From NCBI GenBank assembly GCA_965603825.1, contig CBFDEM010000013.1, forward strand, positions 868,001-932,000: a stretch of DNA of 64,000 bases. Direction: 5' to 3'. A program made the translations under genes and the position numbers. Position 1 is the first letter of the stretch. Each line of letters opens with the position of its first letter. Under the pieces are notes generated by a model. It ran no database searches, was not told where the DNA came from, and was given only the letters and a program-made list of their open reading frames with translations. This document shows, piece after piece, positions 35,670 through 64,000 of this stretch. This DNA is from Blepharisma stoltei ATCC 30299. Its lineage: Eukaryota > Protista > Ciliophora.

Positions 35670-36533
35670 TATTTATCAAACTCTACAAATATATATTTTT
35701 AACTGGGCTTATTCTGAATAATAATTAATGAATCGACTGATTTAAATGAGAAATTAGAATTTATTTAACTAATGCGTAATAGGTAAACAATTATTAAATG
35801 GAATTAATTGGAAAAGACATTAAATTCTCTTGCCTTGTCAGTAATAAAACTAGCAAAATCAGAGATGCAACACCCGCAAGCTCTTTTTCAACTTTTTAGA
35901 TTATTTTTGTATTAATTATTCAATTCTAACCACTTATTAAGAAAAAGTGGAACTGTAAAGAGATACGTTTGTTCAAATATTGATAATATGTTTTCCAGGC
36001 TTTTTATTGAAACCAGACAAAATGGAAGCTGTGGAACATGATTGCTTGCTTTTCTGTATTATTTGCTTTAGTCGTCGCAGAGGAATGAATATATGGCTTG
36101 CTGCTCTTAGCCAATTCACGAAGATTATTGCAGAAACTCACTTTCTATCTGTCCCCATTCCAGAAAATCTGGATTCCATTTGTAAGATTTCCTTTCGAGC
36201 CAACCAGAGCATTTGCACAAAGTAATGAGTTTTTATCTTTAACAATACTTGGGAGTAATTAAAAGTATATTAGTCATATTGGTGAAATCAATGTTCTCAA
36301 GATCGTAGAGTTTATTAATAGCAGCATGATCAGAAAGACTAAAATGATCTTCCAGACCTAAAAGAACTCCATCTATTAGTATAAGCACATAATACCTGCA
36401 AGTCCTTTCTTTTATTTGGCTTTATTTTAATATCAATATTTATTTCTAAAATGTTAGTAGATGAATTCTTTAATTTTTTAACTTATTTTTTATCTTTGTA
36501 TAAATTAAATTCCTTCTTAAGATTATATTAAAT

Positions 36534-37814: not shown

Positions 37815-38429
37815 TATTTATCAAACTCTACAAATATATATTTTTAACTGGGCTTATTCTGAATAATAATTAATGAATCGACTGATTTAAATGAGAAATT
37901 AGAATTCCAAATACTAATTAACTACTTAGTTGGATCACAATTAAAAAATTTTGCGCTTTTCAAAGATTGTCTGTAGTTTTTCAGCTTCTTATTTAAAAAA
38001 ATACACAAAGATTAAATAAATCAAATAAAATTCACAGTAAATGCACAAGTGTGAAAAATTGTGATGATTTTTTTCTTGATATAGCTTTTCTGTTTAAATC
38101 GCAAATTTTAAGTGTGACTGATACAGAAGTTTCGTCAATCATCAATTTATTTTCTAAAATTTTATATTTTACTTAGCTAATGCCAAATTATTAAACAATT
38201 ATTAAATCGAATTAACTGGAAAAGACAATAAATTCTCTTGCTTGTCAGTAATAAAACGTGTGAAACCAGAGATGCAATACCCGTGCTCTTTTTAGATTAT
38301 TTTTGTATCAAAATACAATTCTAACTCTTTTTTACGTTAAATTACTTCTGCCTTCTAAATGGCAGTCCAATATGTTTTTAAATATTTATGTCGATTAAAG
38401 TACAAACTTTTAAACAATAATTTTATTAA

Positions 38430-39737: not shown

Positions 39738-40882
39738 TATTTATCAAACTCTCCAAATATATATTTTAAATGGGCAAAAGAAGTCTTATTCTGAATTATA
39801 ATTAATGAATCGACTGATTTAAATGAGAAACTAGAATTCCAAATACTAATTAACTTCTTAGTTTAGTTGGATCGCAATAAAATATTTGCATTCTCAATAG
39901 ATTTTATGCTTCGTATTGAGAAAGCGCACAAACTTTACGATAAATCAAATAAAATTCACATAAAATGCACACATAGGCTATATTGTGATGATCTTTTTCT
40001 TGATAAAGCTTTTTTTGTTTAGACTGCAAATTTTAAGTGTGACTTATACAGAAGTTTTGCAATCATCAATTTATTTTCTAAAAATTTTAGATTTTATTTA
40101 ACTAATGCGTAATAGGTAAACAATTATTAAAAAGGAGTTAATTGGAAAAGACATTAAACTCTCTTGCCTTTCAGTAATAAACTAGCAAAATCAGAGATGC
40201 AACACTCGCAAGCTCTTTTTCAACTTTTTAGATTATTTTTGGATCAAAGTATTGAATTCTATTTACTTTTTAAGAAGAAGTAAACTGTAAAAATATAAGT
40301 TTGTGCAAATATTGATAATATGCTTTTCAGGCCTTCATTGGAGCCAGACCAAATGGAAGTTGTGAAAAATGGTCGCTTATTTCCTTGCATCATTTGCTTT
40401 AGTCGGCGCAGAGGAATGAAATATACGGCGCGCTGCTCTTAGCCAATTCAGAAGATTGTTGCAGAAACTCTCTTTCTATCTGTCCTCATTGCAGAGCACC
40501 TGGATTCCGTTTACGAGATCAACTTTTTGAGCAAATAAAGCATTTGCCTAGATTAATTAGTTTTTATCTATAAGAATACTTGGGAATTATTAAAAGTTTA
40601 TTAGTCGTATTGATTAACCAATGCTCTCAAGAGCGTTGAGTTGATTAATAACAATATAATCAAAAAGACAAAAATACCCTCCCAGACCTGAAAGAAATCT
40701 AACTATTAGTATAAGCATAATACCTGCAAGCTCCTTTCTTTTATTTGTTTGCTTCATTTTAAAATCAAGATTATTATTTTAAAATATTATGAGATGAATT
40801 CTTCAGCTTTTAACTTATTTTTATATTTGTATCAAAATTAAATTCCTATTTAAAATTATTAATCTAAAAAATTAAAGTTAAG

Positions 40883-42998: not shown

Positions 42999-44275
42999 TT
43001 ATAAGGTCTTGAGATGCTTTAATTGTTTATTCCTCAAATCAAATTCAATGAGTTTGTAGTCGCAGGTTATAAAGTAAAAACTATCTTTATATAGCAATGA
43101 ATAAGAATGGCGAGAATCACCTTGTCTAAACGTGATAGCAGCCCCAAACGGTGTTCATGTATTGATATCGTTTAAGCCACTTTCATAACAGGATCTATTG
43201 TACTGAATTATATAAGCTTTATTTTTGGTTGCTAAAATAGTCTTTCCTGTGTTAGTGTTTAATGTAATCGGACCATTTGTATATGAATTATTTGAAATAC
43301 TATAGCCGTATAGACATGAAGATTGATAGCCTACAATTAATATCACACCATTAATAAAAGCACAGAAATATATGCGTTGCCTGATACTGGATACTGAGCA
43401 ATTGCATTTCAATTTTTTGATCCAAGCGAAAATTTAAATGAAGCGTTTCCATACCCCCCAAACATGTAAACAAAATCATCAATTGCAATAAGTCCAGAAC
43501 AGTTACTGTATCGAGAAGAATTCAAAGGGATTATTGAGTTTTGGAGTTATAATAAAAGTTTCTGATTCAAAGCAACAAAACACAGAGTCATCATTTAGCA
43601 AGCAAGTTGGATCTCATCCTTGTCAGTTCTTATTTATATTTTGAGAAATTGAGGTTTGTGACACAACATCAACAGCAAATAGATCTTTGATTTTGAAATA
43701 TTTTATGATTTGCTCTATTTTTATTGGCTTCAAGCCTTCAAAATTGTCAATATCAAATAAAAGCTTTGCTTCTTTAACAGAAAATAGACTTTCTATTTTT
43801 TCTTTTATACCAGAGTTGTTAATCATCATTATATCTTCTCGTAATTTTATTTCTAATGCATCTTCAGGAGATAATTTTAACGCTGATTCAATAAAGCTCT
43901 TGCTGTTTAGATTGTTCACTTCTTCCAAAGTATCGCATAAACGTGTATATTCGTTTAATCTTTTTTCTATACTTAGAAGCTTTTCTAATGATTTCTTAGC
44001 TGCTTCATTTATTTGCTTTATTAGCAAGGATGATTCTTGAATTATTTTTGACCGGTCTTGCTTTACTTAAAGCTTTAAGTTTTTCAAAAATTTAGAAATA
44101 GTAATTTGGTTTGTAGGTCTGGATTTTTAATTATTCGAGTAAAATGATGTTTCCCAGCTGATTCTACATGCATCCCAAGATGATTATTGCATATAAAGAC
44201 CCCTTTATCCGAGCAATCGCATACATAAATTGACTTATTTTGACAATCTATTGAACAAGTCACAAGCTCATCCAT
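42999..44275 (-). pseudogene. family A copy A5, pseudogene
   Basis: 1277 nt (4 short); deletions near 44105, 43540 and 43365, plus a CAA>TAA nonsense change at 44067-44069. Confidence 0.8.
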
Positions 44276-45134
44276 ATTTACAACTCTACAAAAATATATT
44301 TTAAATCGGCAAACAAGTTTTATTCTGAATAATAATTAATGAATTGACTGATTTAAATGATTTAAATGAGGAATTATATTCCAAATACTAATTAACTCCT
44401 TATTTGGATCACAATAAAATATTTCCATTCTTCAATAGATTTTCTGTTTGCATTGAGAAAAGGCACAAAGCTTATGATAAATTAAATAAAATTGACAGTA
44501 AATTAACAGGCGCGCAATATTGTGATGATTTGTTTCTTGAAATAGCTTTTTTGTTTAGATTGCAAATTTTAAGTGTGTAAAAAGAATTTAGGCATCAATT
44601 TATTTGTTAAAAATTTTAGATTTTATTTAACTAATGCCTGGCAGGTAAACGATTACTAAATGGAATTAATTGGAAAAGACATAAAATTCTTTTGCCTTTC
44701 CACTAATAAAACTAGCTAAATCAGAGACGAAATACCCGCAAGCTCTTTTTCCTTTTTTATATTATTTTGTAATTAAGGTGTTATTAAATTATTGTTACAA
44801 TATAAAAAGCTGAAATTTTAGTATTGAAATATAGCCTTTATAATAAATTCGGTGATGATTTGAGGATATGAGCCCATAAAGGCTAAATTAATAACAAAAT
44901 TGCAAATGAAATTAAATGAGTGACTGAAATTTATAATAGCATATATTCTAACTAATTATTAAAAGAGCTCCATCTATCAGCATAAGCACATAATACCTAC
45001 ACCTGCTTTCTTTTATTTGCTTGGCTATTTTAATACCAAGATTTAATTCTAAAATATTAGAAGATAAATTCTTCAGTTTTTTAATTATTTTTTCTCTTTG
45101 TGTAAATTAAATGCTATTTAAGATTATATTAAAG

Positions 45135-46403: not shown

Positions 46404-47310
46404 TATTTATCAAACACTACAAATATATAATTTTAAAGGGGCTTATTCTGAATAATAATTAATGAATCGACTAATTTAAATGAGAAACTAGAATTCCAAA
46501 TATTAATTAACTGCTTAGTTGGGTCGCAATAAAACATTTGCATTCTTCAATAGATTTAGGCACAAAGCTTAAACATAAAATAGCTATTTAAAGGAAAAAA
46601 TCATCACAATATTGTATACCTGCGCATTTACTTTTAATTTTATTTGACTAAAATTTAAGGGGTTTACTGCTTTAGATATAGAATAGTTATAATCAATCTA
46701 AATGATAAAAACAGCAGCATACTTTTGTCACGAATAATGCTCATTAGATTTAATTGACTTTATATTTTATAAAGACATATTCACTTTCCTAATCGGAAGT
46801 AGAGCACAGCTAAAGCACAATAGCATAATTTCTTTGAATATTTCCTTATTGAGCTTCTAAATATGAAGCATGAGAATTTTTGTTTTTTAGCCCATTTTAT
46901 TGGTGTCCAAGATTTTACAGCTAATACACAATATGCTCGATGCTACATAAGGATTGATTTAACGTTTTTCTCTTGAGCTGGAAGGACATTTATTTCTAAA
47001 ACCTTTCCATAATAAGGTATAGATGATATTTGATTTATAAATTATGCTTAGAATTAATGTTTACAATTTTTATATTTAAAATCATTAATTAAACTATAAG
47101 GTTTTAAGGCGTTTTAATTCTATTTTCTAGTCTTCAAATTTAATTGAATTAGCCTGAGAGTAGTAGTTACAAAGTAAAAGCTATCTTTATAAAGCAAAGG
47201 ATATGAATGGCGACAATCATTATAAGTAAGCATGCTAGCAGTTCCAAGTGTTGTCCATGTATTGATATCATTATAGTTGCTTTCATAGAAGTTTTTGCTG
47301 TAATCAATTA

Positions 47311-47383
47311 TGCATTTATAGATGAATTTGAATACAGTGCTCTATAAATATAATCAGCTGCTCAATTCTAACAAAAATAAATA
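47311..47383. mobile_element. 73-bp TA-bounded insertion, IES-like
   Basis: paralog CAATTA|TATAAGC is interrupted; TAT direct repeat at 47309-47311 and 47382-47384; imperfect inverted ends TATGCATTTATAG.. / TATTTATTTTTG.. Confidence 0.65.
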
Positions 47384-47437
47384 TATAAGCTCTATTTTTA
47401 GTAGCCAAGCAAGTTTTTCCTGTATTAGAATTTAATG

Positions 47438-47541
47438 CTTAATTAATTATCCATATTTTCTAAACTCAAACCCTAAAGTTAAGGCCCAAGCCTTTTTCTC
47501 TTTTTGAAGCATATTACTATTGTAATGTGTAAAATTTAATG
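47438..47541. mobile_element. 104-bp insertion flanked by 9-bp direct repeat AATTTAATG, IES-like
   Basis: repeat copies at 47429-47437 and 47533-47541; absent from the six full-length family-A paralogs. Confidence 0.6.
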
Positions 47542-48117
47542 TGATAGGGATATTTGCGTATAAATTATTCGAAACAATATATCCATGCATACTTGGAGAA
47601 TCATAGCCTCCAATTAATATCGCACCATTAATAAATGCACAAGAAATATATCTGTTATTTGACACTGGATACTGAGCAATCGCTGTTCAATCGTTTAGCT
47701 CTTGTGAAAATTTTAATGAAGCATTGGCAGTTCCTTCAAACATATAAACAAAATAATTAACTGCAATGAGCCCAGAAAGTGGACCATATTTAGAGGAGTC
47801 CAAAGGAATTATTGAATTATTTGGAGTGATAATAAAAGTTTCTGCCTGGAAGCAGCAAAAAACAGAGCCATCATCCAGTAAACAAGTTGGATCTCACTCT
47901 TGAAAATTTTTATTAATATTTTGTGAGGCTGAGCTTTGTGATATAACATCAGCAACAAATAGATCTTTGCCTTTAAAATATTTAATATTTCGTTCAAAAA
48001 CTTTATAATTATTGACGTCAAATGCACTTTTGGGATCTTGAACGATAAAGAGATTTTCTCGTCTTTCTTTCAAATTTTCGTTATTAATCTTTACTATGTC
48101 TCTTGATATTTTATTCT

Positions 48118-48617
48118 TTGCTACAGCACTCTTATTTATAATAAGAATTTGATTGCAATGCATTTGGATATTTCTTAAGCTCTAATATTAAGACTTCTTT
48201 ATAAGCCTTCTATATATCACAGCCATTTTCCAGATTTTATATGCATATAAGTACAAAATCGTATTCCAGGCATCTAAAAACCAAAGCACAAAATAGAAAT
48301 ATTCTTAACAATTAATACCTAAAGGCTTTAGTTGCATATACAAAATTCCAAATGTAGAATTCAAAAGAATATTCTCGCCAATAAATCTTAAACATAAAAA
48401 TTAAATAAACAATAGCTTGATTATACTTAAAAATTATATAAAACTTGCTAAGATTATAAAAAATAATAATTATCTCGTGGCCCATTATAAACAGTAGAAG
48501 CACTTAGGTCACTTATTAAAAATTGTAACCCAAAAAAAGCTTTCTTAATTTATTCATAAAATCATCATTTGCATTTGCTGAAGCCATTTTCAGCAATAAG
48601 CTATACTTCTATAAACA
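48118..48617 (+). repeat. ~500-bp upstream block co-duplicated with family B genes (copy at 52257..52756; diverged copy ~58200..58615)
   Basis: direct alignment by eye, e.g. GAATTTGATTGCAATGCATT..GGATATTTCTTAAGCTCT and ATTCATAAAATCATCATTTGCATTT. Confidence 0.85.
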
Positions 48618-49922
48618 ATGTTTAGTGGTAGATGCTTTAAGGAAAACTGCTATAATAAGCTTGCTGGGAAATGTGAATGCGAAGGAAATATACTATTTTG
48701 CATTGAGCATGCACCTGAACATTTCCAAAAATCCAACAGTAAAAGGCATCAATGGTTGAGCTCCTACATCAAGCCAGCAGATGAAATCAAGCAGCCAATC
48801 ATTGAGAAGTTGACTGAGCTTAAAAAAGATATTAAAGGATACAGAAATGAAGTAATTGCAGAAGCAAGTGAAGTAATCAAAAACCTTAAAATTGCATTTG
48901 GGAAATATCTCGATCAAATTAATCATATAGAAAAAAGATGCACCAAAATAATTGAAGGACTGATGAGCGGAGAACAGTTTCTTGATGTCTCTGCTGAAGA
49001 TGATATGGAAAGTGTGCTTAAACTTAATGCCCAAAGAGCCCAATTAAGAATGGCTGAATGGGGTGCAAAACAATGCTACTTGGATTATAGGGAAATAAAT
49101 GAAGTTATTAGCAGAACTTATGAAAATCCTTTTAATCCTTTTAGAAAGGCCATAGAAGATACTATTGAATCAAATGAGCTATCATTTTTTAGGCATAACT
49201 CTCAAAATTTTACTACAATAAATTTAGATAGCTTTCAGGTAACTTCTACGATTACTCTTCCAGTTCAGGAAAATATTCATGGATATACCCAAAGCTGCAT
49301 ACTGCCTGATAAATCTTATTTTTATTTCGGCAATGCAACTATCAATTCAGGACTAACATTTACGGTAGACAAAAATAAAACCGTTCGACTATTGCAAAAA
49401 GCAAAACAAGGTTGCTATATTGATGCTGCTTTTTATAAGAATTTTATGTATTTGATAGGAGGAAGTACTAATATGGCTGAAAGGTATGATTTTGCCAAAA
49501 ATTCGTGGGAAAGTATAGCTCCAGTACCTCAAGGTTTGAATTTCAGTTACAGCTGCAGTGCTTTATTGAAAGATTCAATTCTTATAGCTGGATATTATTT
49601 GAATAAAATGATATGCTATAGCATTAGTCAAAATAACTATAAAGATGTTCCTAATTTAGTGCTGAATGCTAATTGTCATAAATTTATGATGAGAGGAAAC
49701 AACAGAATTTATTTAGTAGAGAAAGGAAACAGAATTATGGAAAGCGCTGAAAACGATTATTCAAGCTGGACTCAGGTAGGCGACTGTGGTATTGCAAATG
49801 GCGGTACACTTCAATCAAGTATTGTTCGTTATAAAGGTTCTCTTTACTCCATTCATTATGATAGCCAACTATGGAAATTCGATCTGGCTTCAAAGCAAAT
49901 CTCTCAAGTAAAAAACGTCTAG
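48618..49922 (+). CDS. family B copy B1: B-box-like Zn finger, coiled coil and Kelch-like propeller (434 aa)
   Basis: CxxxxC-x7-CxC-x6-CxxH-x3-H-x8-H; FMYLIGG...AERYDF...W Kelch motif; intact. Confidence 0.88.
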   Translation: MFSGRCFKENCYNKLAGKCECEGNILFCIEHAPEHFQKSNSKRHQWLSSYIKPADEIKQPIIEKLTELKKDIKGYRNEVIAEASEVIKNLKIAFGKYLDQINHIEKRCTKIIEGLMSGEQFLDVSAEDDMESVLKLNAQRAQLRMAEWGAKQCYLDYREINEVISRTYENPFNPFRKAIEDTIESNELSFFRHNSQNFTTINLDSFQVTSTITLPVQENIHGYTQSCILPDKSYFYFGNATINSGLTFTVDKNKTVRLLQKAKQGCYIDAAFYKNFMYLIGGSTNMAERYDFAKNSWESIAPVPQGLNFSYSCSALLKDSILIAGYYLNKMICYSISQNNYKDVPNLVLNANCHKFMMRGNNRIYLVEKGNRIMESAENDYSSWTQVGDCGIANGGTLQSSIVRYKGSLYSIHYDSQLWKFDLASKQISQVKNV

Positions 49923-51884: not shown

Positions 51885-52245
51885 AAATTTCAGCATGCTT
51901 TTAAAAAAATTTTGGCAAATCAATGAAGTTGGTAAAAGATGCACCAAAATTAATATAAAACTATAATGTGAAAAAGAGCTTCTGAATGCTGCTACTAAAG
52001 ATGATATAGAAAACTTGCTCAAACTCAATATTGAGAGAGCCAATTCCAAAAGGATGAGTTTAGTACAATCGCTGACAAATGAATTATAGGAAAATGAATG
52101 AGACTTATTAAATCTTTTCAATCCTTTATTGGAGCTGTTGGAAATGAAATTGAATCAAATGAACTGTCATCCTTTAGGCACAATGCTTCATTTTTTATTA
52201 TAAATTTAGAGAGATTGGAAATTTCTTCCATAAGTACTCTTGATT
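51885..52245 (+). pseudogene. decayed middle fragment of a family B gene
   Basis: remnants KRCTK, KDDIENLLKLN, EIESNELSSFRHN with stops and frameshifts. Confidence 0.6.
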
Positions 52246-52256
52246 TTCAATTCTAA

Positions 52257-52756: not shown

Positions 52757-54038
52757 ATGCTTAGTTGCAGATGCTTTAAGGAAAACTGCTATAATAAACC
52801 TGCTGGGAAATGTAAATGCGAAAGAAATGTACTATTTTTCATTGAGCATGCACCTGAGCATTTCCAAAAACCCTGCAATAGAAGTCATCAATGGCTGAGC
52901 CCTGACATCAAGCCAGCAGATGAAATCAGCCAACCAATTATTATAAAGCTGATAGAGCTCAAAAAAGATATTGAAGGATATAGAAATAAAATAATTTCAG
53001 AAGCAAATGAAGTAATCAACAACTTTAAAACTACATTTGGGGAGTATCTAGATCAAATTAATAACATAGAAAAAAGATGAAGTAAAATCATTGAAGGACT
53101 GATGAGTGGAGAAAAGTCTCTTGATGACTCTGCTGAAGATGATATGGAAAATGTGTTTAAACTTTATGCTGAAAGAGCCCCTAGATGAGATTCAAAACAA
53201 TATTGTTTGGACTATAGCGAAATATATGCAGCTATAAGCAAAACTTATGAAATTCCTTTTAAAGAGGCCATAGAAGATACTATTAAATCAAGTGAACTAT
53301 CATTTTTTATGAGTAACTCTCAAAATTTCACTACAATAAATTTAGATAGCTTTAAGATAACTTCTACGGTTACTCTTCCAGTTCAGGAAAGAATTCATCC
53401 ATATACCTCAAGCTGTATGCTGCCTAATAAATCGTATTTTTATTTCGGCAATCCAAATACGAATTCAGGTCTTACATTCACAATTGACAAAAATTACAAT
53501 GTTAAGCAACTGCAAAAGTCAAAACCAGGCAGCTATATTGATTCTGTTTTTTATGAGAATTTTATGTATTTGATAGGAGGAGACACCAATATGGCTGAAA
53601 GGTATGATTTCGTCCAAAATCAGTGGGAAAGTCTAGCTCCAGTACCTCAAGGTTTGAATTTCGATTTTAGCTGCAGTTTTTATTTAAAGATTCAATTCTT
53701 ATAGCTGGATTAAATTTCAATAAGATGATATGCTACAGCATCAGTCAAAACAGCTATAAAGATGTACCTAATTTAGTACTAAATGTTAGTTATTGCAAAT
53801 TTATGATGAGAGGGAACAACAGGATTTATTTAGTCGAGAAAGGATGCAGGATTTAGAAAGCGCTGAAAACAATTATTCAGGTTGGGCTCAAGTATGTGGC
53901 TGTGGCATTGCAAATGACCGTCAACTTCAATCAAGTATTGTTCGTCATAAAGGGTCTCTTTATTTCATTCATTTTGATAGCCAACTATGGAAATTCGATC
54001 TCACTTCAAAGCGGCTATCTTATCTAAAAAACGTCTAG
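52757..54038 (+). pseudogene. family B copy B2, frameshifted
   Basis: 1-nt deletions near 53678 and 53853, in-frame deletions, Zn ligand C>F (LFFIEH). Confidence 0.75.
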
Positions 54039-54439
54039 ATTTAAATTTAATTCTTTTACTTGGAATTGCATATATTTCAACTAATTATTTAATTAAATAA
54101 AATCTTGAATATCAAACTGGATATAATTTTTTTTGAATAAACATATCAGCCTTTATCATTCACATTTAAGACTTTTTGAACCCATATTCGAATTGAGTCT
54201 TTTGCTAAAATTAAATAATTCCCTGTAAATTTATAACAGTTTATAGAGTTCTCGTTGTATTTTATTCTATGAATTAATTTACCTGACACAATCAATAAAT
54301 GAGAAATGGTTTTTAGTTAGGAAGATATAATACACTTACAAAGCATTATTCCTCTAATTTTCTCATTAATTAAGAGATTTAATAAAATTTCTGCACTTAG
54401 AAATGATAAGTTTTTCAATTTTTCTATCTTTTGGTTCAA

Positions 54440-54660: not shown

Positions 54661-55855
54661 CTTCTGAATACCTGGAAAAAAGCATAATTTGATAAAGTCT
54701 TTGCTTATGTTTTTTGATTCTTCATTGATGAGTGAGATTTAATTGAAGAGATATTTTCTATATTTTTGATATTATTGAGAATCTTTTCAATTAAATCTTT
54801 CTTTAGAGCTGATGATTTACCAAATTTTATTCTTCCAGGATTTTCTTGAATATGTTTAATTGAAGGTAGAGAGTTTTTTTTGCCCCTAGAAATCTGCTAT
54901 TTAGAATTCCAACTACAAAATCTAAAAATCCTTGTTTACTTGACAACTACTTTTGAATTTCAATGGAAAATTCATGCATGTCCTTCAAATTGCCTACTAA
55001 AATTATTTTTTATTGTAGCAATCCAAAATGGCAGTTCAGACTTGCTTTTACGATTGGCAAGAATAAAAATGCCAAACAACTATAAAATTCATAAGTTAAC
55101 TCTTAATTTTTATACTTGCTAAGGTGATATTATACGCTTGCTGAAAGATATAATTTTAAGCAAAAAGAGTGGCAAAGCTTTGCTCCTACCTCAAGACCCA
55201 GTGTTTTGCTATAGTATAGCAGCTATTATAATAACTAACAAATTGCATAAGGAACTAAGTGACAGTCCGTAATTTATCTTTCTTCGAAGGAATTATCTCA
55301 AGTAAAAACTGTCTAGGATAAATTTAATAAAAGTTGAATTGCTCTAAATTTTATATCTAAATTATAAAACTAAATATTTTATTGATAATAATTTTATACA
55401 AGTTTGCATAAGAATAGGCAATAGACAATGCACATTATGATTAAGCTTACCTATGTTTTCTAAGGCTGCATGATTCAATTCCATATATAGTTATCTTTCT
55501 GAAAATTGAGCCTGAAAGCTCTAAAGATGACAGTAAAATTCATTATTTATATGATAAAAATGCTAGAGCGAATAAAATTTGCTATTTTGTTGCTCCTAAT
55601 TATTGCTCTTTTTATTTATAAGTAAATAATTCGAATTTCTAGTTTTAAATAAATTGATTATTCCAGTCAATACACCTTAAATTGTAAAATTTTTGGTTGA
55701 ATAAAATACTCTTATTGTTTGCATAAATAAAAATAAACCCAATTTAAAAGATCAATTGAGATTATAAAGCTTAATATTTCTCCCATTTTTTGTGGAAAAC
55801 CATAATGGCTACTGATGTTGATTTAATATCTTAATAGACATCAAATCTATAAAAA

Positions 55856-57288
55856 ATGTTTAGTGGCAGATGCTTCAAAGCTGACTGCTATAATAAGATT
55901 GTTGGAAAATGTGAATGCGAAGGAAATGTACTATTTTGCTCTGAGCATGCATTCGAGCATTTCCGAAAAACACCCTCTAAAGGTCACATATTACGAGATT
56001 CTTACATTAAGCCTGCCAATGACATCAAGCAGCCAATCATTCAAAAGTTGACAGAGCTTAAAAAAGATATGCATAATTTTCTGAATGCAATTAAACATGC
56101 TTTATCAACATTAAAATAAATAAATAAATTAAATATAAGAATATTAAAAATAATTAATAGCTATTAAAATTTTTGTTTAATTCTATCAAACTGTATATTA
56201 AAGCATTCAGAAGTCAAGCAATAACTAATGCAGGTGAAGTTATCAAAAATTATAAAATCGCTTTTGGAAAATACATAGATGAAATTAATTTTATTGATAA
56301 AAGATGTAGTAGTTTGATTGATGTTTTGAATAATGGAAAAGAGGTTCTTGACATCTCTGGGGAAAATGACTTGGAAAGTATTATCAAACTAAATGCCCAG
56401 GCTGCTCAACTAAAAATGCTTGGGTGGGATGTAAAGAAATGCTATTTCAACGCACAGGAATTAAGTACCTCTATAAGCAAAATATGTGAAATCCCCTTCA
56501 ATCCTTTTGGAAAGGCGATAGAAGATATGATTGAATCAAACGAACTTTCATTTTTTAGACATAGCTCTCAAAATTTTACAACAATAAACTTAGACAGCTT
56601 TGAAGTGACTTCTACAATTGCACTTCAAACTCAAGAACCAATCCATGGATATACCTCAAGCTGCATGCTGCCTGATAAGTCCTATTTTTATTTCGGCAAT
56701 GTAAATTACAATTCAGGACTAACATTTATTATTGATAGAAATAAAAATGTTAGACAATTACAAAAATCAAAACCAAGTGGTTATATTGATCCTATTTTTT
56801 ATAATAACTTTATGTACTTGATAGGGGGACAGAATAATATAGCTGAAAGATATAACATTGCTCAAAATTCATGGGAAAGTATAGCTCCAGTACCTCAAGG
56901 TTTTAATTACACTTATAGCTGCAATGCTTTATTGAAAGATTCAATCCTTATAACTGGATATCATTTCAATAAAACGATGTGCTACAGCATAAGTCAAAAC
57001 AATTATAAAGATGTACCCAGTTTAGTGCTAAATGTGAATTATTATAAATTTATGATGAGAGGAAACAACAGGATTTATTTAGTCGAGAAAGGATTAAGGA
57101 TTATAGAAAGCGCTGAAAATGATTATTCAAGCTGGACTCAGGTAGGTGGCTGTAGCATTTCAAATAGCCCTTGACTTCAATCAAGCATTGTTCGATATAA
57201 AGGCTCTCTTTACTTCATTCATTATAACAACCAACTATGGAAATTCGATCTGGCTTCAAAACAAATTTCTCAAGTAAAAAGCGTCTAG
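55856..57288 (+). CDS. family B copy B3, intact except for a 128-bp IES-like insertion (434 aa after removal; UGA=Trp at 57172)
   Basis: 1433-128=1305 nt, the same length as B1 and B4; junction KKD-I-KAFR matches paralog KKDIKAYR. Confidence 0.78.
56071..56198. mobile_element. 128-bp AT-rich, TA-bounded insertion, IES-like
   Basis: ATAT direct repeat at 56067-56070 and 56195-56198; inward ends TATGCATAATTT / TATACAGTTTG; no GT-AG. Confidence 0.75.
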
Positions 57289-58615: not shown

Positions 58616-59920
58616 ATGCTCAGTGGTAAATGCTTCAAGGAAAACTGCTACAATAAGCTTGTTGGCAAATGTAGATGCGAAGAAAATATACTATTCTGCA
58701 ATGAGCACTTACCTGAGCATTTCCAAAAGTCCAGCAATAAAGGGCATCAATGGTTGAGCTCGCACTTCAAGCCAGCAGATGATATAAAGCAGCCAATTAT
58801 TCAGAAGTTGACTGAGCTTAAAAAAGATATTAAAGCATATAGAAATAAAGCGCTTAGAGAAGCAAGTGAAATAATCAAAAACTTTAAAACTACATTTGGG
58901 AAATATCTAGATCAGATTAATTATATTGATAACAGATGCAGCAAAATAATTGAAGGGCTGAATAGTGGAGAAGAGTTTCTTGACGTCTCTACTGAAGATG
59001 ATATGGAAAGTGTGCTTAAACTTAATGCACAGAGAGCCCAATTAAGAATGGCTGGATGGGATACAAAACAATGCTGTTTGGACTATAGTGAAATAAATGC
59101 AGCTATAAGTAAAACTTATATAACTCCCTTCAATCCATTTGTAAAGGGCATAGAAGATGCTGTTGAGTCAAATGAACTCTCTTTTTTTAGGAGTGGCTCT
59201 CAAAATTTTGCCACAATAAACTTAGATAGTTTTCAGGTAACTTCTACGATTACTCTTCAAATTGCGGAAAGCATTCATGCGCATACTTCAAGCTGCATAC
59301 TGCCTGATAAATCTTATTTTTATTTTGGTAATCCAAGTTATAATTATGGCACTACATTTATGGTAGACAAAAATAAAACCGTTCGACTATTGCAAAAAGC
59401 AAAACAAGGTTGCTATATTGATTCTGTTTTTTATAAGAATTTTATGTATTTGATAGGAGGAAGTGCTAATATGGCTGAAAGGTATGATTTTGCACAAAAT
59501 CAGTGGCAAAGCTTAGCTCCAGTACCTCAAGGCTTGAGTTTTCAATATAGCTGCAGTATATTATTGAAAGATTCGATTCTTATAACTGGATATAGTCTCA
59601 ATAAAATGATATGCTACAACATCATTCAAAACAATTATAAAGATGTGCCCAATTTAGTGCTAAATGTGAATTATTATAAATTTATGATTAGAGGGAATAA
59701 CAGAATTTATTTAGTTGAGAAAGGATGCAGAATTATGGAAAGCGCTGAAAACGATTATTCAGGCTGGACTCAAGTAGGTGGCTGCGGTATTGCAAATAAC
59801 GCCCCACTTCAATCAAGTATTGTTCGTTATAAAGGCTTTCTTTACTTCATTCATTTTGATAGCCAACTATGGAAATTCGATCTGGCTTCAAAGCAAATTT
59901 CTCAAGTAAAAAACGTCTAG
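58616..59920 (+). CDS. family B copy B4 (434 aa, intact)
   Basis: uninterrupted ORF collinear with B1. Confidence 0.88.
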   Translation: MLSGKCFKENCYNKLVGKCRCEENILFCNEHLPEHFQKSSNKGHQWLSSHFKPADDIKQPIIQKLTELKKDIKAYRNKALREASEIIKNFKTTFGKYLDQINYIDNRCSKIIEGLNSGEEFLDVSTEDDMESVLKLNAQRAQLRMAGWDTKQCCLDYSEINAAISKTYITPFNPFVKGIEDAVESNELSFFRSGSQNFATINLDSFQVTSTITLQIAESIHAHTSSCILPDKSYFYFGNPSYNYGTTFMVDKNKTVRLLQKAKQGCYIDSVFYKNFMYLIGGSANMAERYDFAQNQWQSLAPVPQGLSFQYSCSILLKDSILITGYSLNKMICYNIIQNNYKDVPNLVLNVNYYKFMIRGNNRIYLVEKGCRIMESAENDYSGWTQVGGCGIANNAPLQSSIVRYKGFLYFIHFDSQLWKFDLASKQISQVKNV

Positions 59921-60229: not shown

Positions 60230-61505
60230 ATGTCAATTAGTAGGTGCTTTGTTGATGGCTGTATGAGCAAGCTCTTTGGAAAGTGTGAATGTGAAGGAAT
60301 CGTCTTATTTTGCAAAGAGCACGCTGTTGATCACGTAGTAAAACCATCTTCTAAAGGACATCAATGCTTGAGGCTTTACTTTAGGCCAGCAGACGAAATT
60401 AGGCAGCCAATTATCGATAAGCTGAAGGAATTCAAAAATGATATCAAAAAATATAGAAATGCAGCAATTGCTAATGCAAATGAAATAATCAACAATTTTA
60501 AAAATGAACTTGGAAAATATATCAATAAAATCAATGAAGTAGAAATGAGATGTAATAAAATGATTGAGATTTTATATAGTGGAGAAGAGGTTCTTGATAT
60601 CTTTACTCAAGACGATATGGAAAACGTGTTGAAATTAAATGCTACTGGAACTAAAGAGTGCATCGCCGATTGAAATATAGACGAATACCAATTGGATTAC
60701 AAGGATATAAATGCAGCTATTAAAAACATTTATAAAATCCCTTTTAAGATTTATTGGGTAATTGAATCGAACAAGCTTTCCTTTTTTAGAGCAAATTCTT
60801 CAAGTTTTACTACTATCAACTTAGGTTTTTTCTACAGTAGCTCTTCCAACTTGAGAACCAGATCAAGAATATGCTAGAAGCTGCATACTTCCAGATGGAT
60901 CTTATTTTTACTGTTGCAATCGGAATTCTACATCAGGCCTCACATTTATCATTGACAAAAATCAAAATTGCAAAAGGCTGCAAAGCTCAAAATTTAATAT
61001 GAATGTTGATCCTATTTTTTACAATAATTTTATCTACTTGATTGGTGGAAATTATAATCTGGCTGAGAGGTACGATTTTAAACGAAACGTGTGGGAAAAG
61101 ATGGCAAAAATACCTCAGGGTTTGAATTTACAATATAGTTGTAATGCGAGATATAGAGATTCCATTCTTATAGCAGCCTACAATCTTCATAAAATAATAA
61201 TTTATAACACATCTCAAAATAACTATCAAGACGTCCCGAATTTGGCATTGAGTTGTGGGTGATTTAAATTGATGCTAAAAGGGAACAATAGAATTTATTT
61301 GCTTGAGAGAAATAGAAGTATTTTCGAAAGTGCTGAAAACAGCATTTTAAGCTGAAGTCATATAGGAACTAATAGCATTCCAGCTGAATATTATCAGTCA
61401 AGCTTTGTTCTGTATAAGAAATGCTATTATATTGTTGATTATGGCAATAAACTCTGAAAATTTGATTTAACTTCAAAGCAAGCATCTTATATAAACACTG
61501 TCTAA
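60230..61505 (+). pseudogene. family B copy B5, frameshifted
   Basis: ~11-nt deletion at ~60830; TGA at conserved Trp sites (60671, 61353, 61455 in L-W-KFD); ends TAA 61503-61505. Confidence 0.72.
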
Positions 61506-61711
61506 AATAAGTTATCTTGATTTAATAATCCTCTATTTATATTTGCAAATAAATTGGAGTATTAAGATTGCCTTTATATCTGAGTGTTGCTTATTTGGGT
61601 CTTTTTCTAGCGTTTAATGAGCAGTAAAAAGGCAAAGGCTGCTAGTTATATTTCAGTAATTTCTTTGCACTTTATTAGCAGCATTATCTATTAAGTGTAT
61701 TAATATATTTA

Positions 61712-62327: not shown

Positions 62328-63620
62328 ATGTTTAGCGGTAGGTGCTTCAAAGATGGTTGCACAAGCAAGCTGCATGGAATATGCAAATGTGAGGGACTCA
62401 TCCTATTTTGCAAAGAGCATGGACTTGAGCATGTAGAAAGTCCAACTCCTAAAGGACATCAAATCGTAAGATGCTATTTTAAGCCAGCAGAAGAAATCAA
62501 GAAGCCGATTATCGATAAGCTTATAGAATTCAAAAGAGATATAAAAAATTTAGGATTGAAGCGATTGCTAAGGCCAATGAAATTATAAATAATTTTAAAG
62601 TTGCGTTTGGGAAATATATCAATCAAATAAACGAGGCTGAAGCAAGATGCGACAAAATGATTGAAATTTTATATAATGGACGAGAGTTTCTTGATATTGC
62701 TACTGAAGATAATATGGAAAATATTTTAAAATTAAACGCTACAGACATTCAACAAAAGACGATCTGGTGAAATATAAGCCAATTAAGCTACAAAGAAGTA
62801 AATGAAGCTATTGAAAATATGTATAAACACCCTTTTGTGGCTTACTTTGCAGGAACTTTAGAAGATGAAATTGAATCAAACGAGCTTTCATTTTTCAGAC
62901 ATAATTCTTCAAATTTTGCAACTATAAACTTAGATAATTTACAGATTTCTTCTACAGTAACTCTCCCAACTCAAGAATCAATCCATGGGTATACAGGAAG
63001 CTGCATACTTCCTGATAAAACTTATTTTTATGGCTGCAATAATAATTCTAGTTCAGCCACCACATTTACGATCGACAAAAATAAAAATTTAAAGCAGCTG
63101 CAAAACTCAAAGGTTAATTATAATGTTTTTCCTATTTTTTTCAATAATTATATCTATTTAATAGGAGGAAACAATAATCTGGCTGAGAGGTATGATTTTA
63201 AACAAAATGTGAGAAAGTATGGCTCCTCTGCCCCAAGGTTTAAATTTTAACTACAGCTGTAATGCGCGATTTAGAGATTCAATATTTATAACAAGCCAGA
63301 GTCTTCAAAAAGTAATAGTTTATAGCATTACCCAAAATAGCTACCAAGAGATTTCGAATTTGGCATTGAGTGTTAGTTATAAATTGATACTTAAAGGAAA
63401 CAGAAGAATTTATGTATTTGAGAAAGGGGGAAGAATTTTCGAAAGCGGTGAAAACAATTTTTCAAGTTGGACTCAAATAGGAACTAATAGCATTCCGGGT
63501 AACCCTGGCCATTCAAGTATCGTTTATTATAAAGGTTCCATTTACTTTGTTCAGCATCAATATCAGCTCTGGAAGTTCGATCTCACTTCAAAGCAAGCAT
63601 CTCAAGTAACAACTTTCTAA
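62328..63620 (+). pseudogene. family B copy B6, two small deletions (pseudogene or assembly error)
   Basis: 1-nt loss in an A-run at ~62545 and a 2-nt (TG) loss at ~63210; otherwise collinear with B1, B4 and B5. Confidence 0.65.
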
Positions 63621-64000
63621 AAATAAAGATTTATCGCTTTAATAAAATTCGATTTATATAGCATCAAATTGCATAATGCATTATCGCTCGTTATTTCATC
63701 ACATGATTATAATTAGTTGTTTTATTAAGTCTTGCAAAAAGTAAAGAGCATAACTCTGTTAATATTTCAATCAGCCTTACTATTGAGTTGCAGAATATAC
63801 ACTGTATAGCGTCTTTACGCTCATGGATCTTCTTTTCGATATCTCCGAGAAATTAGGAGTTGATTTTACTTTTACCATTGTATTTGAGATGAGAAGGACT
63901 AAAACGTGAAAAACAGCCGGGCTCTATCGAGATGTGATGGGCAGAGGATCAAGAGTAGGATTTCCGTTATACCTGTGGAACATAGGGAAAGCTATAAAGT

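Follow-up and report, generated by a model that had tools for sequence, protein, structure and literature searches.

The window, a stretch of 64,000 nucleotides at positions 868,001-932,000 of MAC contig 13 of Blepharisma stoltei ATCC 30299, carries an A-family gene array (34-48 kb) and a B-family gene array (48-64 kb). The contig is 941,580 bp long and ends 9,580 bp past the window, which makes both arrays subtelomeric; the B-family gene B3 lies ~18 kb from the contig end. The MAC genome of this species comprises 41 Mbp in 64 telomere-to-telomere contigs and reads UGA as Trp; the assembly was made in Flye from HiFi sequencing of a MAC-enriched fraction, and its genes were predicted by Intronarrator (PMC9942806). 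In the public annotation B3 appears as two genes, one of 87 aa and one of 290 aa (P0001, starting at an internal Met at 56416), without a 434-aa product. Pfam returned only borderline Kelch matches for the pieces of B3, and UniRef lists one B3 paralog as a B-box domain protein.

The two parts of B3 are separated by a 128-nt segment with a G+C content of 0.148 (85% A+T), bracketed by ATAT at 56067-56070 and again at 56195-56198. Positions 1-214 and 339 onward of B3 align without gaps to three paralogs and overlap by 4 nt at the junction (Table 1). Coordinates, base composition and paralog alignment all agree with the initial annotation, which had described a very AT-rich 128-bp insert between two ATAT repeats, and on re-reading the ends were indeed found to run inward as TATGCA on the left and TATACA on the right. 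A TA-containing direct repeat on both sides is what is expected of a Blepharisma-type IES, although a flanking repeat of at least 4 nt would arise by chance in ~3-4% of cases at the local base composition (our estimate) and is modest evidence alone. According to the available text of a preprint on Blepharisma IESs, short elements most often have repeats of the ATAT type, and their ends follow the weak consensus TAT rrn ttt t (10.1101/2022.05.02.489906). The ends of the B3 element, TATGCATAATTTT and TATACAGTTTG, fit in part, although so weak a consensus cannot discriminate; their TATGC and TATAC termini recur in two excised IESs, those at 56613 and 59245. A search of the insert for clear terminal inverted repeats found only TATRCA (5/6 positions), and a 9-nt subterminal inverted pair lies at unequal distances from the two ends. 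Slippage growth of the tandem arrays inside the insert may be the reason why the element measures 128 nt instead of ~110 nt.

Table 1. Features of gene B3 and of the corresponding insertion site (site alpha, codon 71) in its paralogs. Positions are those of the window.
Feature	Position	Strand	Description
B3 coding part 1	55856..56070	+	Codons 1-71, Cys/His-rich B-box-like N-terminus; ATG at 55856
B3 coding part 2	56199..57288	+	Kelch-like C-terminal part; stop TAG 57286-57288
Insert with both ATAT repeats	56067..56198	+	132 nt; excisable unit 128 nt in any of five registers
Tandem arrays within the insert	56113..56153	+	(AAAT)x5.2 at 56114-56135; 15-nt period x2.9 at 56113-56153
4-nt overlap of the B3 flanks in paralogs	48829-48832, 52968-52971, 58827-58830	+	Alignment
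IES junction upstream of B3	55830..55833	+	58 bp, repeat CTTA, 23 nt upstream of ATG; absent from MAC
IES junction in B3	56429..56430	+	201 bp, repeat AT; absent from MAC
IES junction in B3	56613..56614	+	120 bp, repeat TA; absent from MAC
Site alpha, B1	48829..48833	+	Junction of excised 108-bp IES, repeat ATATT
Site alpha, B2	52968..52972	+	Junction of excised 111-bp IES, repeat ATATT; sequence highly similar to B1 IES
Site alpha, B4	58827..58830	+	Empty in germline scaffold and MAC; reads as the B3 junction would after removal
Site alpha, B5 (distant paralog)	60441..60444	+	Junction of excised 114-bp IES, repeat ATAT

As it stands, the B3 frame reads into the insert and reaches a stop at 56117-56119, 17 codons downstream, which yields the 87-aa ORF. 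When the 128 nt were taken out by script, leaving one repeat, a 1305-nt ORF of 434 aa was obtained (UGA=Trp), equal in length to B1 (48618) and B4 (58616), just as had been proposed from the sequence at the outset. The accompanying claim that the insert is the sole lesion of the gene also held, with the remainder open and a dN/dS of about 0.26: the individual values were 0.27 against B1 and 0.25 against B4 (dS 0.62 and 0.74), compared with 0.32 between B1 and B4, and the first 71 codons, upstream of the insert, are under equal constraint. In a substitution-only neutral simulation, stop-free sequences made up 28% at 2% divergence and 4% at 5%. B3 shows past purifying selection and no other lesion, and from this selection and the intact frame it follows that the element was excised efficiently for nearly all of the history of the gene. 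Either the failure of excision in B3 is recent, or excision continues in a share of copies large enough for selection to act on the gene.

For comparison with the germline, pieces of contig CAJZBQ010000013.1 of assembly GCA_914767885.1 (1,256,929 bp, 1.335x the length of MAC contig 13) were aligned to the window. They are 99.5-100% identical to it (most blocks 100%), save for insertions with short flanking direct repeats. This contig looks as a scaffold of the "MAC+IES" assembly should, in which IESs were rebuilt from micronucleus-enriched long reads and placed into the MAC reference, as far as the available text of the preprint describes it (10.1101/2022.05.02.489906). The 128-nt element of B3 is present in the scaffold too, which includes the MAC reference by construction, so that its presence there is not independent.

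In positions 25296-64000 of the window, 42 true IESs of 51-900 bp were mapped in this way, a density of about 1.1 per kb that differs little from the genome-wide value, given 39,799 IESs in 41 Mbp. Their G+C content ranges from 0.17 to 0.51, and the B3 element (0.15) lies below all of them. At least 10 of the 42 have TTA/TAA/TGA repeats and CTCCCCC...GGGGGAG ends (e.g. at junctions 25328, 28494, 46100, 47048 and 52432); these look like the abundant Pogo-derived MITE family reported for the species, judged by the part of that report available to us. The IESs at 48578-48598, 43861-43875, 62958-62973 and 52240-52251 have long flanking repeats, 12-21 nt with slight imperfections, instead of TA-type ones. 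Within the A family, the spacers at 37906-38162, 39838-40087 and 44377-44616 hold 240-255 bp that are missing from the copy at 35754-35764, where the junction overlap is 8-11 nt and adjoins the junction of a 66-bp IES at 35759; this segment may have been lost by deletion in the germline or by an imprecise excision that became fixed. Gene A7 (minus strand, 47130-48163), a 5'-truncated copy of 288 aa versus 422-426 aa, contains a 73-bp insert at 47309-47381 with a TAT repeat and the left end TATGCAT, as well as a 104-bp insert at 47430-47533 with the 8-nt repeat ATTTAATG on the plus strand. Removal of both restores the frame relative to six paralogs. None of these six has a germline IES at either site, so the A7 inserts are without the positional support that B3 has. 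They may represent IESs peculiar to this lineage that have been retained, or else simple insertions into a dead copy.

The six B paralogs were aligned in their MAC form, and the IES junctions were mapped onto the alignment. The B3 insert falls in column 211, at codon 71, between the Asp and the Ile of KKD/I, and at this very nucleotide excised IESs are found in B1, B2 and B5 (Table 1). A random insertion into a gene of 1305 nt would hit it well under 1% of the time, and by position the B3 element is homologous with these proven IESs. No IES at site alpha was found in B6 on comparison of the germline scaffold with the MAC; the empty site in B4 suggests precise loss of the IES from that gene. 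In the tree of the family B5 and B6 branch outside B1-B4, so the IES at site alpha is ancestral to the B array, and B6, like B4, would have lost it precisely. Four distant paralogs on other contigs (P0004-P0007) have no IES at site alpha and carry theirs at codons ~330 and ~401-404; it follows that the site either originated in the array of contig 13 or has persisted nowhere else. The IES site at codon ~330 is common to B2 and these four paralogs.

Sequence comparison of the elements gave a different picture. The B1 and B2 IESs at site alpha are clearly homologous (z = 29), whereas global alignment against dinucleotide shuffles detected no significant similarity of the B3 element to the IESs of B1 and B2 (p 0.25 and 0.05) or of B5 (p 0.99), and likewise none between the B5 IES and those of B1 and B2. 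The homology of the B3 element to its sister IESs is therefore one of position only. Conserved position with diverged sequence is usual for old Paramecium IESs. A second shared site, at column 632 (codon 210), is occupied in B2 (125 bp, 53365), B3 (120 bp, 56613) and B4 (111 bp, 59245), and all three IESs are excised. That positions are kept among paralogs and sequences are not can be seen at 53365, 56613, 59245 and 62958. Excision is independent of the function of the host gene, given that the IESs of B2 (52757-54075), B5 (60230-61545) and B6 (62331-63650), genes broken by stops or frameshifts, are cleanly excised.

Retention in B3 is selective. The 128-nt element is present in the HiFi/Flye MAC consensus and thus departs from an ordinary IES, which is removed from somatic DNA. 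The 201-bp and 120-bp IESs of the same gene, both within 550 bp of the insert, are absent from that consensus, as is the 58-bp IES upstream of the start codon. With three nearby IESs gone and the 128-nt element kept, micronuclear contamination is not the explanation; the state of the consensus, built from HiFi reads that span the four sites, implies that most MAC molecules excised three of the elements and kept the fourth.

We conclude that the 128-nt segment is most probably an old ancestral germline IES that stays unexcised in most somatic copies of B3 and thereby splits the gene. The name that suits it best is retained (or former) IES rather than working IES. The initial annotation had inferred an IES retained in somatic DNA, and the excised IESs at the same codon of B1, B2 and B5, together with the selectivity of retention, now support that part of its proposal. 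The ancestor of the B-box/Kelch tandem array of contig 13 would already have carried an IES at codon 71. In B1, B2 and B5 it is removed precisely during macronuclear development, presumably by a PiggyMac-type excisase acting at the TA-containing repeat, while in B3 it would no longer be removed from most somatic copies and so is part of the MAC consensus, where its stop divides the gene into the 87-aa N-terminal and 290-aa C-terminal ORFs.

The cause that we favor would act in cis: by growth of its AAAT and 15-nt arrays, the B3 element may have reached 128 bp at 15% G+C and so have left both the length class and the helical phase of the "periodic" IESs of ~110 bp, with little RNA-guided rescue available to it. 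The periodic class has a length peak at ~110 bp and low scnRNA coverage, and in the available text of the preprint it is attributed to geometric constraints of the excisase (10.1101/2022.05.02.489906). The sister IESs (108-114 bp) lie within this peak; the B3 element exceeds them by about 18 bp. The idea is weakened by the neighboring IESs of 120, 125, 131 and 136 bp, which are excised normally, so that length alone is no bar; the ends of the B3 element look normal, which also counts against a defect in cis.

These normal ends, resembling those of excised neighbors, would be expected if the element were the same ancestral IES with its cis signals intact and its retention were epigenetic or clonal, the main alternative, which we consider distinctly less probable. 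In the epigenetic form, the IES would have been retained once by chance and then protected by the maternal MAC through scnRNA scanning, as for the maternally controlled IESs of Paramecium; in the clonal form, retention would have been fixed by amitotic assortment in the long-cultured strain ATCC 30299, and re-excision would be possible in another lineage. An otherwise intact B3, constrained until recently, is in keeping with either form. So are the scnRNA-like 24-nt RNAs that exist in Blepharisma, as well as the stress laid on a continuum of excision and on partial retention hidden by assemblies, a matter discussed in general terms in the available text of the preprint (10.1101/2022.05.02.489906). 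Against this alternative stands the low scnRNA coverage of short, old Blepharisma IESs. The short, old IESs of Paramecium are likewise the least dependent on the RNA pathway.

An independent and recent insertion at an ATAT hot spot, after loss of the ancestral IES as in B4, is unlikely. The newcomer would be a MITE-like or filler insert to which the excisase is blind, no more than normal MAC-destined DNA within a gene that died recently; its flanking 4-nt repeat could then be a target-site duplication, the weak TATRCA terminal and 9-nt subterminal inverted repeats would belong to it, and the nearby truncated A7 offers two inserts that have no IES counterpart in the paralogs. The dissimilarity of the B3 element to its sister IESs would also be explained, but this point is weightless given that the true IES of B5 is equally unlike those of B1 and B2. 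Against a newcomer speaks that the insert sits at precisely the nucleotide where three paralogs carry an IES. A search of the 41.5-Mb MAC genome and ~80 kb of the germline scaffold (~13 Mb of germline-limited DNA lie outside this search) moreover returned the insert itself as its only match. The very young MITE that the initial annotation had offered as an alternative is thus not supported: the insert is single-copy within the searched DNA, has no clear TIRs, and occupies a site that predates the split of the paralogs.

An assembly artefact, in which micronuclear or minority IES-plus reads entered the MAC consensus, is very unlikely. A MAC-enriched fraction is never entirely free of micronuclear DNA, but Flye takes the majority, and the IESs 230 and 415 nt downstream and 230 nt upstream, all of which HiFi reads would span together with the insert, are missing from the same consensus. 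Least credible of all is an unusual spliceosomal intron. Removal of the segment does restore the frame; the gene family, however, is intronless, and the public annotation did not splice the segment, with Intronarrator taking its introns from RNA-seq. The five registers begin with AT, TA, AT, TG and GC and end with GT, TA, AT, TA and AT, respectively, none giving GT..AG, in line with the earlier argument against an intron, and at 128 nt the segment compares with Blepharisma introns that are predominantly 15-16 bp long (PMC9942806).

Among known elements, the retained IES of B3 is most readily set beside the short TA-bound IESs of Blepharisma. As these are described in the available text of Seah et al. 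(10.1101/2022.05.02.489906), it shares with them the alternating T/A repeat and, in part, the TAT-purine ends; unlike the periodic class as given there (65-115 bp), it measures 128 bp. It is also non-repetitive, intragenic and within the size range of its neighbors, and differs from such IESs in being part of the MAC reference consensus. Partially or fully retained IESs are known from Paramecium MACs, with retention scores, maternally inherited retention and switches such as mtA. Here, too, a TA-bound intragenic IES stays in somatic copies and breaks an ORF, and paralogs keep the position of an IES while its sequence diverges; Blepharisma, however, belongs to another ciliate subphylum, and retention in B3 is known from the assembly consensus alone. 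Cryptic IESs resemble the B3 element in that both belong to the MAC reference and have at their borders a TA-containing repeat open to cutting by the excisase, yet they are erroneous cuts in true MAC-destined DNA, whereas the B3 element goes back to a true IES site and splits a gene of which it forms no part. With BogoMITEs and other Pogo-derived MITE IESs it has in common that it is short, non-autonomous and flanked by a TA-containing repeat. A BogoMITE, as far as the accessible description goes, measures about 390 bp; there are about 8000 of them, and they combine TTA/TAA repeats with C-run/G-run ends, of which junctions 47048 and 52432 give examples. The B3 element, in contrast, is single-copy and has no such ends.

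Retention of IESs as such is already known, well so in Paramecium, and the B3 case is one more instance. The available text of the Blepharisma preprint cites Vitali 2019 and Catania 2021 on the subject (10.1101/2022.05.02.489906). The B array adds a matched natural set on the question of which features lead the Blepharisma excisase to cut. One IES has left four descendants at a single codon of a single family: those of B1, B2 and B5, 108-114 bp long, are cut out, whereas that of B3, 128 bp long with tandem expansions and 15% G+C, is retained next to two IESs that are still excised from the same gene. The comparison also corrects the public annotation, in which one gene is split into products of 87 and 290 aa, and B3 may show how a gene begins to die when DNA splicing fails. 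It is conceivable, at rather long odds, that retention serves as a heritable, reversible DNA-splicing switch, in which excising or keeping an old IES turns a subtelomeric B-box/Kelch member on or off and the state is handed on by the maternal MAC to its successor. If that were so, B3 would be a heterotrich parallel to the control of mating type in Paramecium, and the epigenetic inheritance of IES states from MAC to MAC would predate the split of the two ciliate subphyla.
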